Source of the DNA: Geosiphon pyriformis uo1 | Taxonomy: Eukaryota > Fungi > Glomeromycota | NCBI GenBank assembly: GCA_016748015.1 | Contig: JAAOMT010000502.1 | Coordinates: 496,001-560,000 of the forward strand | DNA: 64,000 nt | Direction of reading: 5' to 3' | Part shown: one piece after another, positions 17,407 to 38,011 of the stretch | Numbering within the stretch: the first letter of the stretch is position 1 | Layout of the letters: each line of letters opens with the position of its first letter | Made by a program: the position numbers and the translations under genes | Notes under the pieces: model-generated | What the model was told of the DNA's origin: nothing | Databases searched by the model: none | The model's input: only the letters and a program-made list of their open reading frames with translations

Positions 17407-18669
17407 TCTTTTTTTTCGAGTGTCAAAGTTTAAGCTCTTAAGATAATTTTTTATTCTTTTGTAAATTCTGAACTTACTAGTTATCACTTTCATGTTATTG
17501 GCATTTGAATACTAAGTTGTAATAAGATGTTTTATTGAAGCAACGGAAATGCTTTAATTTTGATTTAGTCCTAAAAACATAAAGCTTTTTTTCATTTATA
17601 TAATAAAAACTTTGTAAAAATTTAAGTTTTAAAGACTAAAATTAATTTCTTAATAATATTTCAAAGTTTAAAATATGAAAACACAATTGCATCTTAAATA
17701 TATTTGAAAAATTTTAATTTAAAATAGTATCCTATTTTTTATATTAAATATTAAATTTTACAGAATTTTTTTTTTCATATAAATAATCATAATTTTAGAG
17801 AATTTTCACAGGTTAATCAATAGTAATTTTTGTTTTTTATACATATTCTTAAGGTTTAATGCTAATGTTATAGTGCTTGTAAAAAATTTAATTGCCAAAA
17901 TTTATTTCCATTAAAGCTCTGAATAGATAAAAAAAATTTATTATCGATAACAAAAATTTATGTCTATAATCTCAAGCCATTTAAATAGTGATGACATTAT
18001 AAGACAGAACTCAATAAAAATTCATTAATGATAAAGTTTTTTCAATATTTTTTATTCAATAATCAAATTTGGTTCCTTAAATACTGTATTAAATACATGC
18101 TATTTAACATTTTTAAAAAGCATTTGATTATATGTACTTTACTGATGATTGTTTTTCAACTTTTGAAAACATATAAATAAATATTCAAATTTCTAACTCT
18201 GTTCCTTAGTTTTAAGAATTATTCACAATATATATACACGGAGTTTATCGATTAAGAATTTAAATAGATAACCAAAATAATGAAATGATGCAAAGTAATT
18301 AAAAAGTGTTTTTAATTTTCATCACTCTTTTCTGTTTACCTATTGGTAAATATGAAATTGGTGTAAATATTTGATATTTTTTAGCTGACAAAATGAAAAC
18401 CAAGCTGGTAAATGGGACTTCAAAAATAAACTCTTTATAACAAAATTTAGGTTTCCTTTAAAAATTAGCAAAAACAGAGTAGTCTGTCATTTCTGGGTCA
18501 AAAAAAAGGTCAAGATTTCTAAAGTTCTTTAGAATATCTCACAATTGATTAACCAAAGTTGTATTATTTTCACAAAAACCTTTGAATTCAACGCTTCTTT
18601 ACACTTAAAGAAAAAAAATTGTTTAATTGTGGATGGTCTAAAAAAACAATTCATCATGTTCAATTGGAA

Positions 18670-19235
18670 ATTAAGGCCCATTATGGATAAAGTCTTTTGG
18701 CATATCCTCACTTGATTGACCAGCGTTACATTCCCATCTGGATAGATCATACAACGTAAATAATAGGCAATACTATTATTTCTGTAAAACCAAGATTTCA
18801 TCAAGCAATGCCCGTGAGATCTTCCAAGTGCCGTTTTTATCACAATCATAATCCTGCCAGTTGTACACTTTGGTCCCTCCTATTCTTCGAATTTTGTCGC
18901 ATTGACCACAAGTCTTGAATGTGTAAGCTTTATTCCGGATAATAACACAAACCCTTAATTCCTCGGCTTTGCTGATCAGACAATGGTGTCAAATTTGCGG
19001 GTAATCTAAGTGATTTTCAGTGAATTTCACTTTACATTTGAAAAATTACTTTATTAAGTCAACAGGTCATTTTACTCCCACGTTTTCAGAAGGATACTAA
19101 TAAATTAGCATTTTTGCAGATAAGATCATCCAACTACTTGGACTTTTTAATAGCAACGTGTTCTCCTTCTTTGGATACAGCAGATAAAAATTGTATTATG
19201 AAAAGAATGTCTTGTGAAAGTTCATGCTTACAAAT
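18670..19235 (-). pseudogene. Fanzor2 / IS607-TnpB-like nuclease relic 1 plus structured 3' non-coding region
   Basis: Open frame 18988-18776: HHCLISKAEELRVCVIIRNKAYTFKTCGQCDKIRRIGGTKVYNWQDYDCDKNGTWKISRALLDEILVLQK*, matching the TnpB pattern E.YTSKTC..CG..K...C..C....DRD.NGARNI. Upstream are LDDLICK (~19110-19135) and a probable decayed DPG.RTF (~19200-19230). Confidence 0.8.
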
Positions 19236-20530
19236 TAAAAAAACCACAAATTTTTAAAGAATGGAGAAAAAAATGGTATTAAAAATTAAGAACATTCTCC
19301 GGTTTTTTTGTCTCAAGTCCTAATTGTTTGAAGTGGATATATGAGCCAATATTTTTGATTCAAAATTGAAAAAAGAAAAGTTGCTCTCTTGTTACTCGAA
19401 ATTTTTTCTTTGCAGTAAAAATACAGATGTGAAAGTAAAATTACTTATAAGAAAAATAAAGAAGGTAATATCACCATTTTGAAAAGTTAGCTTAAAAAAA
19501 TGGAATACTTATTTTTATAATTTTAAATCTAAAAAATAATAATTGATGTTCAAATATTTTAATATACTTACAGTGTTTTGCAAAAGTCATTAAGGTTTAT
19601 TTATTATTTTAATTATAATTATTACATTATTCAACAACAAATTTGAAAAAAGATATTAACAAACCAAAAAAAATATCATTATTAAGTAATTCCATAAATA
19701 AAAACATTAATAAATATTACTAATGAAGAATCAATTACAATTTCGATAAAACTTTTGATTATTTTTTATAAAGTTTTTTTTTTTTGAATATACAGCTTTT
19801 TCAAATATTTCGGAGCAGTTACTTTCCCTTTTTGAATTTAAAATGGGACAGATTTTTTTAATTAAAAAATTGATGCTCCAATTTATTTTTGTTAAAAGTG
19901 GGTAGATTTTAAAAAACGAATCAGAGAATAAGAAACAAAGTGAAACTTTAACTGCGCTTTTTAATTAATAGTAATAAAGACATAATATTTTAATCTAAAT
20001 ATGGAATAGCTTATTCGGATCTAAAGTCACAAGAAACTTTACAATTTTTAATAAATGTATTTTTTGGGATAAAAAGAGTCTCCATGAAATTTCTTTGTAT
20101 TTTTTGATGCTAGTCCATTTGGTTTTTACCAACTTCCGTGGAATTAAAAGTAAGAAATAAATTGATCCGCTAACCATTTCGAACTTTTTGTCATTCAAAT
20201 AAATTCTTGTCCTATTATCAAAATTTTAATTTAAAGAGAAATGAAAATACTCCAAATTTACGTGACCCAATGTTAATTGCGCAAATTTTTAATCATACAA
20301 TTTGATTGTTTTGGCATAGTAGACTGAATTTTTTGTGCTCGTCTCATTTATTTTATTAAAATTATCTAACATATGAATTGAAGTCATATTTTTAGCGGAA
20401 AAACTTTAACTCAAAGAACTGTGAAAATTTCTCATTTCAAATATATTTTAAAGGGGGAATTTGATTGATTCATGTGCAGCTTACCAAACTGTTTTGCTTT
20501 CCCGTCTGAACCTGGAAAAAACGTAGAATG

Positions 20531-20548
20531 TAATTAATTAATTAATTA

Positions 20549-20579
<31 letters not shown>

Positions 20580-20586
20580 AACTAAC
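20531..20586. repeat. Compound tetranucleotide microsatellite (TAAT)n-(TGAT)n-(TAAC)n
   Basis: Directly visible. Confidence 0.9.
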
Positions 20587-23500
20587 GACGAAGATTCAGA
20601 GGTCAATCAAATTTTTTTAATCTTGAAGGGATTGAAAATCAAAATCTTGGATATGGTCCGTGCACTTGCATTAATTTGTTTGGGAAACCGTGCAGTAGCA
20701 ACCTGCAGTGCACCACAAATAAAGAATATCCGAATCCGTTCCGATCATCATCAAAATATAATTTATAAGCTTCATTCAAGCACAAATTTGAAGACCAAAA
20801 AAGTTTACAAGTAATTACCTAAGCCTTAAATTTCCTTTGCATTAGGCCCGGGAGTCAGATTTACTTTAAGAAAAGAAGAACAGAAGCAATATTAAGAAGC
20901 GTTTCAAAAATTTCGCAGTTATGGTTACGTCAGACTGAATTTAAAGAGGTTTTATTTAAGATTTTCGGCAATCAAGAATTTTTTAAATTTTCTTCAAAAT
21001 TTGTCTTTGGATTGAAATTGATTAGAACTTTTAAAGTTACTATGAACAAAATTGGTTTGGCTTTTGAAATTTATTCATTATTTATTCATCATTTTAAATA
21101 TATATATATATATATTTTTTTAATTGAAATTTCTTAGTCAATTTTATTTAAAGTGATTTATAGGTTTTAAACTTAAATAAGATTTATATATGAGATAATT
21201 GGAACCTTGCCAATTTTGAAACAGGGATTTCTATTGGACAATAAATATTCTACAGTTGATTCATTTATAATTCGAAGTATTTGCAAGAGCCTGGTACGAA
21301 AAAAATTCATGGGTACCTGAATCTAAATTGTTTCTATAAGATCAAAAATCAATTAAGTTTTTTTAACAATTTATAGGTTCCCATAACATTTCATTTATCA
21401 CTAACTCATGTGCAAGACAAATGTTGTTCAACCACGAAATATTAAGCAGCTAAAACCCGTAAAACTTGAAGTTTTAGGTAAAATATTTTATATTCTACAT
21501 GAAGCAACAGGAAAGTTTTTCAAAGTATTCTTTTTAAAATAAAATTTATTTTTGTTTGTTTTATTGTACAATGGTTTTTTAATAATTCCCCAAACTATTG
21601 GTTAAGAAAATAATTAAAATTTTCAAAGAATAAATTAAAACAATTAAAACAATTAAAAAATAAATAAATAAATAAATTATAAAAAAATATTTTTAAATAA
21701 TATCCGAAAAGATAACACAGATCTCTGTTAATACCGAGAAGATTTTAAAATTTTTGAAAAACAACTTTTACTTTCAGTAAAGAAAGCAACAAAGTTTGGG
21801 GTAGAAATACCAATAATTGTGATTATAAAAATAAAAATAAACTAAAAATGGGGGAACATATTTAACATCTCAAAAGACTTTTTTGAGTTAGAAATTTACC
21901 GTAATCCAATTTATCCTATTTGAGTAATTTATTTTCAGAACCTTGGAGAACAATTTTTATAATTTAGCAAGGGCTTTTTTTTGATATTATTATTATTATT
22001 TTTAATTATCAAAACTAAGAGAAAAAACGGAAATTAATATAATTAATTTCAAACGCACTAAATTGTAAATATATATGATTCTGCATGCATGCATATAATA
22101 AACTAAGAATAACACAATTTTTTTTTAAAGTTTGATAAGTTATGACTTTCTTTTTTTATATATGAGTGAACTGTTTTTATCATATTAAGAAATGATTTTC
22201 AAAATAATGATTGAAAAAGGTGGTGATTCCAAATTCCCATTTTAATGGTTTCTTTCATTGTAGCATTTGGGTTTCCGAGGTTTGTAAAACATAAAAATTA
22301 ATAGCTCAAAATATTACAACATGATCATATAATTGGTAATTTTCATCAGCCAAAAAATTAAATTAAATCAACAAGAACCAATCAATATTCTAAATCATCA
22401 TTCTTTATTTCAAATTCATTATCGTAATATTTGTTAATTGTGTTCCCCACATGTTTTTGTTGATCAAAAAAATTATTTTTTTTGGCCGGCAAATTCCGAC
22501 ATCAGGAAAAATTGGCAGAGATTTTTACATGTGCATGCACTAGACTTTGAATAGTTCGATAGAGTTTCCATAAATGGACTTTGACAAAATTAGAAGATAA
22601 GAAATGGATCTAACCCTTTCTTTTTTAGCTCAGTAAAAAGAGAAATTTAATCAGACAAGGTTTGAATCATTTCTAAAAATGGTAGGATATTGCTTTTTGA
22701 AACGAAATATATGATTATTATAAAAAAAAAAAGTTTCCTAAAAAGCCTGACTCTTGAGGATTTTCCCAATAATCACACAAAGAGCTTTGATGAAATAATT
22801 CTGCAGTATTGAAATAAATATATATATATATATATATATATGCAGGGGCTGAAAATACATTAAAAAAATAATTTTTAGGTACAGATTTTATAAAACAGAA
22901 TATTAGTTTTTGACATATGACCTTTTATTTGCATAATAACGAATGAACACATTTTCAGAAATAAATAGTGTGGCGCGGGTGACTTTGGAAGTACGAAGCT
23001 TTCATTCAAACATGCACCTAAACATGCACCTATTTTATTTAGCACATTTAAAAAAGTAGAAATCGGCATCACATTAAAGTTTTAAGTTGAAAATTGAGAA
23101 TTTAAAACGACGAAATAATTTTCTTCTTTCTTTTTCCATCACTTGTGCCATCGTTACTAACTAATTTTTATTTTGTTTTTTTGACTTTTCGAAGTCTCAC
23201 TTTCCTTTAAATTATTTTATTAAAAATTCAAATATATTTAATTAGTAAACAGAAAGTTTCAACTTTCAACCTCCTTTTAAAATTTTGATACAATTCTACC
23301 TGCACTTTTGAATTTCAAGCAATTCGGTTCTTCGACTTTTGGTCTCTTAAGGATTTCAAGAAAATAACATTTCCCAATAAAATCTAAAATCATAAACCTC
23401 TCCCTATTTTCAAGCCTTTTTTTCGTTGATATGAGGTTTGAATTGTTCTATTTCTCAACTTTGATTCTTTTCTCAATTTATTCCGGATTTTAATAACAAA

Positions 23501-35870: not shown

Positions 35871-36460
35871 GGATGGATTGTAACACATCAATAATAGACA
35901 ATATTAAGCATTGTTATCATTTCCTGTTTCATCAAAAAATGCTCAAAGAAAGATCTTCCAAGTGTTATTTTCATCTCTATCTACAACAATCTCACAATTT
36001 TGGCAATTTTACACTTTGTACCTTTCAATTCTTTAGATGTTGTCAGATTAACTAAAAGACTTAAGATATATAAGCTTCATTCTGGATAATAATATTAATT
36101 CTTTAATCTTGTTAATAAACATTATTGAATATAATATGTGCTTTACAAAGTGTTTTCTAAAAGTTTTTCATGTAACATTTCTTGTTTTGTAATTTACCAT
36201 GTATAATACTTCAAAAAAAGAAATAAAAATGGTCTTGAATTCATAAACAAAGAATCTAATTAATTTTTAGTAAATTTTAACAATTATTAGATCATTTATT
36301 TTTGTGTTTTAGTAATATTAATAATTTTTACTTTTAGCAGATAAAATCATTCAAATATTTAAAAATACAAGCTATTATTTAATAAAATGTTTGTCAATTT
36401 TATTTGTCTGTTTTATAAGAAAGTTATACAGACTTAGAATTAATAGAAACTGTATAAACA
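35871..36460 (-). pseudogene. Fanzor2 / IS607-TnpB-like nuclease relic 2, probably continuing into the AT-rich block
   Basis: Minus strand: VSINS (from SIDP, ~36440), YLNDFIC, EFKTIFISFFEVLYMVNYKTRNVT*KTFRK, IIQNEAYIS, KV*NCQNCEIVVDRDENNTWKIFL*AFFD. Shares CACTTGGAAGATC and the downstream non-coding segment with relic 1. Confidence 0.85.
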
Positions 36461-37999
36461 AAATTATCTGTTTGAATTTACATACTTGTTTTTATTAATA
36501 TTAACAATATTTATTTTGTTTACATATATAATTAGATTTATAATATATAGACTTGTATAAAACATTATCAATTTTAAAAATATTATTCAATATATAATGA
36601 TTAATAATTTGTTTAAGTTTAGTAAACAGCTAAATTTTTAAATTTGGAAAAACAACATAGAATTTATTTACTAAATCTTTTATTATTAATATTAATAAAT
36701 TAAATATAAGATACTTTTATAATTTGTATTTGTTTATTAATTATATCTTAACTTAATAAACCATTTAAGATAAACTAATTAATATAACCAATAATCAATA
36801 TATATAAAAATCTTTTATTTTTTTAAATTTATTTTTAAACAAAATAAAAAATACATATTTATTTATAACTTTTGCTATATTTGGTTAAAATTTTTTATAA
36901 ATACATAAAAATTACAAAAAATCAGATTACAAAAGCCAAAAAATTATTTTTAACTTGTTATTTTTTAATTTATAAAAATAGTTTAATAATTATATTAAAT
37001 TTTTGTTTTATAATAATTTAATATACTATTTTTATTTTATAATAATTTAATATACTATTTTTATTTTCAGTTTTATAAAAATTATATATATAATAAAACT
37101 AAAATAAGTTATTTATGTTTATAAACAAATAAAATAATACAATATATTAATATATATAAATTATTATAAATTTTATTAATTATATAAATTTTTTAATATA
37201 TAATTTATATATAGTATTTGGTTAATTTTAAAAAAAATATAAAAAAAACTTTTATTTTTATTATTTTCGATTATAAACTATTTATTAATAAAAGAAAACC
37301 CAATATTTATGTTTGTTAATAAATTAATTATTTTTAAAAAATAAAATTTTTTTAGTATAAATATTTTTTTTAAGTTATAAATAAATATATATATATATAA
37401 TAAGTTTTATTATCAATAATCTTAATTTTTTTAAAAACACAAAAATTTATTTTATTATTATTTAAGTTTTATTTTAAAATATTTTATTTAATAAGCTAAA
37501 ATTTAATAATATTAAATATTAAATAAAAATTAATTATACTATATTAAGTATACAAAATATACAAAATATTTTATTATAATATAATTATATTTAATTTATA
37601 AATTTTGATTAATTATGAAATATTTCTATTAAAACTTTTAAAAATTTTCAAAAATAAAATTATTTTAAACTTATAAATACTTTTAAAATTGTTGTTTTTT
37701 GTTATCTTTTACTTATTAATAAAAATATTAATATATTTTCTTAAATAGTTAAGTTATTTTAAATACTTAGCAATCAAATTATTAAAACAAATATTTAATA
37801 AAAAAACATATTATTATTCTTATTAAAAAAAAATCTTATAATATATAATCTAAAATTTAAAATTACTTTAAAATTACTAATTATAAAACTGTTAATTTAC
37901 TAATTGAAAATTTTGTAGTTTGTTTTAACTTTATTTATACAGATAAAAAATTACTTTATTAAAGTATATAATATTATATTATCAAAAAATATTTAACTT
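36460..37999. other. Ultra-AT-rich decayed repeat DNA (similar blocks at 42834-45140, 51900-52440, 54700-55150)
   Basis: For example 37141-37200 has no G or C; it is not a simple tandem repeat and grades continuously out of relic 2. Confidence 0.7.
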
Positions 38000-38011
38000 T
38001 AAAAAAAACTT

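Follow-up and report, generated by a model that had tools for sequence, protein, structure and literature searches.

A decayed IS607-Fanzor2 element in the fungus Geosiphon pyriformis and the guide-RNA module predicted at the right end of its family

Introduction

The DNA analysed here, referred to below as the window, is a stretch of 64,000 nucleotides from the fungus Geosiphon pyriformis uo1 (GenBank assembly GCA_016748015.1, contig JAAOMT010000502.1, positions 496,001 to 560,000). It is AT-rich, with a GC content of about 25%, and contains two decayed Fanzor nuclease copies on the minus strand, which we call relics 1 and 2. IS607-type elements with a Fanzor2/TnpB nuclease are a known kind (Bao & Jurka, 2013; PMC3627910). 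The IS607 TnpB of ISXfa1 binds a reRNA of ~150 nt which extends ~17 nt beyond the element boundary, and the first right-flank base of IS607 elements is fixed because recombination takes place at matching dinucleotides (Yoon et al., bioRxiv 10.1101/2023.08.09.552727). The omegaRNA of the ISDra2 TnpB is processed from the mRNA of the nuclease itself (PMC10278001). The locus raises the question of whether the 3' end of relic 1 preserves the scaffold of such a guide RNA and, if so, where this scaffold begins and ends. A sequence-only reading of the window had proposed an omegaRNA scaffold at 18670-18781. We find that the kind of feature was recognized correctly, but that its place and anatomy were not: the module runs upstream from 18740.

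The transposon family and its nuclease

The genome (a 128.3-Mb assembly in 792 contigs) was searched at both the DNA and the protein level. The relics belong to an IS607-type transposon of ~1.9-2.0 kb in which a TnpA of the serine-recombinase type is combined with a compact Fanzor2/TnpB nuclease. Judged by how far other copies cover the full-length ones, the repeat unit is ~1.8-1.9 kb, or ~2.0 kb when the left end is extended; this end reaches about GATGAAAATATTTGCTTAATAATGCC..., often preceded by CC. A covariance model of the right end (R1, described below) identifies at least 137 right-end modules genome-wide. The DNA and protein searches yielded from dozens to well over 100 decayed copies, all of which carry stops and frameshifts, and no intact nuclease copy was seen in this genome by either search.

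Translations of the family nuclease read ...VIIQNEAYTSKTCSQCG...CRNCG..DRDENGARGIFLRALL and also ...IIQNEAYTSKTCSQCG...CRNCG..DRDENGARGIFLRALLDGALVLQ, the latter followed by the stop. The family copies carry the RuvC-II glutamate, followed by TS-K-TC, a CxxC..CxxC zinc finger and then the RuvC-III motif DRDxNGA, and the Cas12f1-like TNB domain (PF07282) is recognized at their C-terminus with E = 1.1e-11. The closest solved structure is that of the mimivirus Fanzor2 L79 (PDB entry 9b0l; E = 3.2e-8); the match to Cas12f/TnpB-like chains is weak (E about 0.02). The closest named proteins belong to Glomeromycotina (Funneliformis geosporum, Geosiphon pyriformis and Rhizophagus irregularis). As for the recombinase, a Pfam Resolvase domain is found upstream in a decayed copy (E = 1.8e-4, just under the cut-off) and a MerR plus Resolvase gene adjoins the nuclease in relatives from public assemblies, while relics 1 and 2 themselves are without the recombinase part.

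The ends of the element are those of an IS607-type transposon, with no long terminal inverted repeats, a short matching core and a fixed flank base. Compared with the reverse-complemented right end, the left end did not score above shuffles in three of four copies; L085 scored 21, which was equalled by six of 300 shuffles. The left junction reads ..CC/GATG in three of five copies and the right junction ..ATCC/G, where the slash marks the element limit. We note that at the left end (e.g. in L083, L085, L041 and L080) (T)TGCTTA(A/G)TAA is directly repeated two or three times in a span of ~70 nt. The right-end hairpin contains a motif like it, and these are probably binding sites of the recombinase. 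The copies also fall into two subfamilies according to the codons of the linker between the zinc finger and RuvC-III, which read GGG ATT GTG ATA in one and AAG CTT GTT ATG in the other.

The right-end boundary

The right end was mapped by aligning the 3' flanks of 16 genome copies, then of 17 anchored copies and then of 44 distinct ends. In the copies of this genome the shared sequence runs past the coding region and stops abruptly at ...TAGTATTGCCTATTATTGATGTGTTACAATCCATCC, followed by G. This alignment of 3' flanks, which had been suggested as a check of the original proposal, yielded a sharp common end, located at 18740 in relic 1 (...AATCCATCC) and at 35871 in relic 2. Among the 17 anchored copies the majority fraction falls from 0.84 in the final 40 nt before the boundary to 0.43 beyond it, and the first base of the flank is G in 12 of the 17; in relic 1 it is A. 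No similarity among the copies was found beyond the element end in the aligned flanks, and the flanks of relics 1 and 2 share only seven of 40 positions. The same end, ...AATCCATCC followed by G, recurs outside this genome in the metagenome relative L093 and in L096 from Rhizophagus irregularis, both of which have complete right ends.

The ancestral stop codon of the family is TGA, 72 nt before the element end. In relic 1 the stretch 18670-18739 is non-element flank with no similarity between copies, and it holds the 3' half of the second and all of the third of the hairpins originally proposed. Its first 20 nt, 18720-18739 (minus strand), occupy the position from which an omegaRNA would have taken its guide.

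State of the two relics

Relic 2 retains the better preserved right-end module (35871-36003, minus strand), which ends ...AATCCATCC at 35871 and matches model R1 with 88.6 bits (E = 3.4e-20). It is 82% identical to the family majority and has a fold z score of +0.3. A remnant of the nuclease gene follows upstream at 36004-36398 (minus strand), as identified by blastn to the full-length copies L032 and L035. Of the changes from the majority in relic 2, 31 of 41 are C>T or G>A, a signature resembling RIP or deamination; the corresponding count for relic 1 is 24 of 48. Further upstream, relic 2 runs into an AT-rich desert of ~2 kb, with a GC fraction of 0.115 in 36001-38000.

The right-end module of relic 1 (18740-18865, minus strand) aligns with model positions 1-166 of R1 with 45.1 bits (E = 3.7e-9). 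It shares 78% identity with the family majority and lacks 46 of its columns, and the last 150 nt have a fold z score of -0.7. Overlapping the module is an open remnant of the Fanzor2/TnpB C-terminus (18779-18988, minus strand) which spans RuvC-II, the TNB zinc finger and RuvC-III. It matches PF07282 with E = 2.9e-4, under the gathering score, and has 78% DNA identity to copy L032. The catalytic motifs have decayed to IIRNKAYTFKTCGQCD ... DYDCDKNGTW, and the relic 1 nuclease is therefore a pseudogene. A comparison of L032 and L035 with the window by blastn located further pieces of relic 1 at 19065-19230 (minus strand), where element positions ~1336-1411 are joined to ~352-420, which implies an internal deletion of about 900 bp. 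What remains of relic 1 comprises positions ~352-420 and ~1336-1411 of the element and all of it from ~1627 onward. Both copies in the window are dead, and relic 1 is an internally deleted, long-dead copy which occupies 18740 to ~19230 on the minus strand.

The feature first noticed in relic 1, a perfect 9-bp stem AAAUAAUAG/CUAUUAUUU (18781-18773 with 18766-18758, minus strand), is present as drawn. Alignment of the copies and the cmsearch output identify it (18758-18781) as the stump of the terminal hairpin of the family, hairpin D, from which the inner ~21 nt have been deleted; at this position 27 model positions are replaced by 6 nt. A separate 12-nt deletion has removed the ancestral TGA and nine more bases. 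The TAA at 18778-18776, which had served as the anchor of the proposed scaffold, is accordingly a secondary stop codon: both it and the perfect 9-bp stem with its 6-nt loop are products of the 12-nt and 21-nt deletions. A remnant of hairpin A, which in the family is formed by GCUCGGGGGA and UCCUCCGGGC, lies at 18810-18831 (minus strand) in the RuvC-III codons (NGARGIFLRA).

Other searches of this neighbourhood gave little. An Rfam search of 18300-19400 returned only two sub-threshold chance matches and no Rfam family, and a word-based protein search with a 228-residue open frame returned nothing, which is uninformative since this query is a mosaic of reading frames. A third match to model R1 in the window (22870-23033, minus strand; 16.4 bits, E = 0.07) was treated as chance. 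A short (TCAA)n/(TTAA)n microsatellite is located upstream of relic 1 at 20540-20600 (minus strand).

Structure predicted for the right-end module

Model R1 was built from 28 genome copies and describes the last ~130-165 nt of the element, made up of the terminal part of the nuclease ORF and 72 nucleotides of non-coding sequence. The module occupies the 3' end of the nuclease gene on its sense strand and reaches the right end of the transposon; in both relics the R1 matches end at the mapped boundary. The last 166 nt of the family majority fold at -59.7 kcal/mol (z = -3.7), with none of 300 shuffles as stable, compared with -44.3 kcal/mol for the antisense strand. The best-preserved copies give z scores of -4.1, -3.8 and -3.1. 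In L093 the last 150 nt have a z score of -3.6 and the 150 nt past the end one of -0.9; the flank past the end of L096 scores -0.5. The proposal that the 3' end of relic 1 holds what is left of a conserved, structured module of the omegaRNA type is partly supported.

The predicted structure contains four hairpins. The GC-rich hairpin A (GCUCGGGGGA/UCCUCCGGGC) would form within the RuvC-III codons for ARGIFLRA, with a tandem G-A/A-G mismatch in L092 and L095. It is followed by two small hairpins, B (GCUU/GAGC) and C (GGUC/GACC), the latter predicted around the stop codon, and by the long, AU-rich hairpin D (AAUAAUAGGC...GCCUAUUAUU), to which an inner UAC/GUA and AGC/GCU extension is assigned. 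A long-range helix, P1, may close the domain by pairing GGAUUGUGAUA (in the codons for GIVI) with UGUUACAAUCC near the 3' end; it is kept only through G-U intermediates and contains a mismatch in subfamily B. The predicted 3' tail, AUCC (...AAUCCAUCC), is free. Several copies share deletions of 11-13 nt inside hairpin D, which are expected from slippage in a palindrome.

Covariation and synonymous-site constraint

The covariation that had been put forward as a check of the scaffold is absent among the dead copies of this genome, but there is some between lineages. In the 28 genome copies 87.3% of the cells are paired, against 87.2% in shuffles, the corresponding scores are 0.111 and 0.109, and RNAalifold gave no consensus structure for 21-28 copies of this genome. 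Such a result is predicted by neutral decay after insertion and counts neither for nor against the module. The end of an element and its ancestral fold can be defined from more than 100 dead copies, but these copies alone supply no evidence of covariation.

Relatives were found with a full-database HMMER search, and five loci from other lineages were read, three of which are cut off before the right end. Hairpins A and B are predicted by RNAalifold from a structure-blind MAFFT alignment across lineages. In the same alignment pair 9 of hairpin A, which links the third position of a Gly codon to that of a Phe/Leu codon, is G-C, A-U, C-G or G-U depending on the lineage. Hairpin D shows compensated changes in L093, where G-C becomes U-A and C-G becomes A-U at adjacent pairs. 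In a model-fitted alignment of nine sequences 18 pairs carry double changes, compared with 7.0 +/- 2.1 in shuffles (none of 500 as many) and one to three in slid controls; this alignment leans to the model, and the counts for helix 5 are inflated since three rows end before hairpin D.

Synonymous sites in the coding sequence provide an independent test. Across four lineages the identity at third codon positions is 0.55 over the last 20 codons compared with 0.34 over the other 138 aligned codons (p = 0.003), and when only pairs encoding the same amino acid are counted the values are 0.57 and 0.35 (p = 0.007). The almost invariant IQNEAYTSKTCS block has a third-position identity of only 0.40. 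The pattern of conservation points to a nucleotide-level constraint that begins in the neighbourhood of hairpin A, ~125 nt short of the element end.

Alternative interpretations

The original placement had the scaffold at 18670-18781 (minus strand), with three hairpins after the stop codon and the element end and guide further downstream. The mapped boundary refutes this placement, to which we attach practically no credence. In its favour, the stems can be drawn and the first 37 nt are common to relic 2. The match of this 37-nt stretch (18775-18739, minus strand) is 28 of 37 as claimed, and none of 200,000 random 37-mer pairs from the two relic neighbourhoods reaches 28 matches; the partner is 35906-35870, one base off the register that had been given (35907-35871). 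The copies do diverge after it, but the point of divergence is 18740/18739, inside the proposed scaffold. Every copy diverges there, 18739-18670 has no counterpart in any of them, and only 18740-18781 overlaps the real module, which the covariance model puts at 18740-18865. It follows that of the three proposed hairpins only the first belongs to the element. The second (CGUUGUA..UGUAACG, 18756-18724, minus strand) can be drawn but straddles the boundary and pairs the element tip with flank; the third (GGAUA/UAUCC, minus strand) is present, although weak, and is all flank. Both are absent from all other copies. Nor does the stretch fold better than chance: the 121 nt of 18670-18790 (minus strand) give -21.3 kcal/mol where dinucleotide shuffles give -22.05 +/- 3.55 kcal/mol (z = +0.21, with 108 of 200 shuffles at least as stable), and the plus strand gives -21.8 kcal/mol, leaving no strand preference of the kind that had been ascribed to G-U pairs. 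The second hairpin might have another origin. The plus-strand flank abutting the end of relic 1 (18725-18739) reads GTTACATTCCCATC, a 13/14 inverted match to the element tip GTTACAAT-CCATC, so that the hairpin is explicable either as a junction feature or by chance. Relic 1 might have inserted tail to tail beside the right-end tip of an inverted copy, or into a target resembling that end, in which case the inverted repeat that spans 18740 would reflect how the target was chosen and not an RNA. The match does lie in mirrored register directly at the boundary; it is, however, only 14 nt long, 109 of 2000 shuffles are as good when no credit is given for position (about p = 0.05), the likeness to an inverted right end goes no further, and the covariance model has no plus-strand match. 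As an account of the locus we consider a tail-to-tail junction very improbable, and the inverted tip itself could be due to chance or to insertion at an end-like site.

A more serious alternative is that the right end is a recombination site at the DNA level only, with hairpin D and the terminal motifs bound by the IS607 serine recombinase and no guide RNA at any time. The sites of serine recombinases are dyad-symmetric, and the junction of the right and left ends, ...CCATC-C-GATG..., has this symmetry. The two ends also share the direct motif TGCTTA(A/G)TA(A/T)TGC(C)TAT, with 12 of 13 and 14 of 17 matches, although this likeness is weak (nine and 29 of 300 shuffles are as good), and a sharp limit of conservation is expected of any transposon end. 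A role as recombinase substrate would account for the conservation of the tip. It does not explain why constraint extends ~125 nt inward into the coding sequence, with covariation of hairpin A at third codon positions and conserved synonymous sites throughout the last 20 codons, nor why G-U pairs, which DNA does not favour, make the sense strand fold more stably than the antisense strand by 15 kcal/mol. Hairpin D, moreover, changes its sequence yet keeps its pairing in L093, unlike a motif that is read by a protein. The two roles can overlap, as they do in known TnpB elements, and the last ~45 nt of the element must at the same time be the transposon end on which the recombinase acts. We therefore regard a purely DNA-level function as unlikely. 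In our view it is quite probable that the last ~130-165 nt of the ancestral element encoded the scaffold of a nuclease guide RNA whose guide was taken from the flank, and that 18740 to ~19230 (minus strand) is a dead IS607-Fanzor2 copy of that element.

Proposed mechanism

The RNA itself, its processing and the use of a guide would follow what is known of IS607 TnpB and Fanzor2. The element has spread through the genome of this fungus, reaching well over 100 copies. Transcription of the ancestral copy would have run across the element end, so that the guide was supplied by the adjoining ~16-20 nt of flank, the first base of which would be fixed as G by the crossover dinucleotide of the recombinase. 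The complex of nuclease and RNA could then have cut empty sites bearing the guide flank, leading to retention or homing of the element. In relic 1 the nuclease gene is destroyed. Its scaffold has lost 33 nt (12 + 21) and about 22% of its remaining bases and does not fold any more, so that the copy is a fossil.

Comparison with known systems

A system much like the one proposed is the reRNA of ISXfa1 from Xylella fastidiosa, where the 3' end of the nuclease gene, up to the right end, encodes a ~150-nt scaffold. By analogy the guide would come from the flank in both, and the first flank base is fixed (here G in 12 of 17). Both elements carry a TnpA with MerR and resolvase parts upstream in the same ~2 kb. 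Unlike ISXfa1, the element described here has a eukaryotic (fungal) host, all copies in this genome are dead and the module is a prediction from DNA. The details of sequence and fold are unrelated to those of ISXfa1 as far as is visible, and no Rfam match links them.

The Fanzor2 of Acanthamoeba polyphaga mimivirus (ApmFNuc/L79, PDB entry 9b0l) is likewise found in an IS607-type element with TnpA and has a conserved structured 3' region, which in the mimivirus is non-coding and the source of the guide RNA (PMC10530073). The protein identity between this enzyme and the family nuclease is modest. The conserved non-coding stretch in the mimivirus extends ~200 nt past the ORF, compared with 72 nt here, and about half of the scaffold predicted here coincides with the last ~30 codons, an arrangement which resembles that of bacterial TnpB and differs from that of the mimivirus Fanzor2. 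The omegaRNA of the ISDra2 TnpB, from the IS200/IS605 group, also overlaps the 3' end of tnpB and stops at the right end, and it has several hairpins and a long-range interaction, both of which are predicted by modelling in the present case. The ISDra2 transposase, unlike the recombinase of the IS607-type element here, is a Y1 HUH enzyme which acts on single-strand hairpin ends.

Implications and intact relatives

Since both of its copies are fossils, the window itself matters little. What the family gains is an exact right-end boundary, a scaffold model that can be tested (R1, with hairpins A to D) and the position at which the guide would start. None of the papers in the literature searched pairs Fanzor with names of Glomeromycotina, and in that literature the guide RNA of this abundant fungal IS607-Fanzor2 lineage has not previously been described. 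We suggest tentatively that the IS607-Fanzor2 elements of Glomeromycotina used a compact guide RNA of ~130-165 nt, about half of it lying over the last ~30 codons of the nuclease, and that some of the apparently intact relatives may even now act as RNA-guided nucleases that use this scaffold. A scaffold in this position would give rise to hairpin covariation between third positions of codons. If the suggestion is true, this would be the first omegaRNA model for a fungal Fanzor2 to be derived from fossils together with living relatives.

The apparently intact relatives would allow a test of whether a compact fungal Fanzor2, with a core of ~460 amino acids, is a programmable nuclease. The ORFs of SRR15128685 and ERZ27397459, which look intact, may represent members of the family that are still alive. 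L091, on an SRR15128685 contig (positions 56-1999), encodes a nuclease relative in a 647-residue ORF, with a low-complexity, lysine-rich N-terminal extension of ~190 residues ahead of the TnpB core. The ERZ27397459 contigs contain nuclease ORFs of 463 and 648 residues with an adjacent or nested TnpA; one of these ORFs overlaps a 248-residue MerR/Resolvase gene by about 60 nt.
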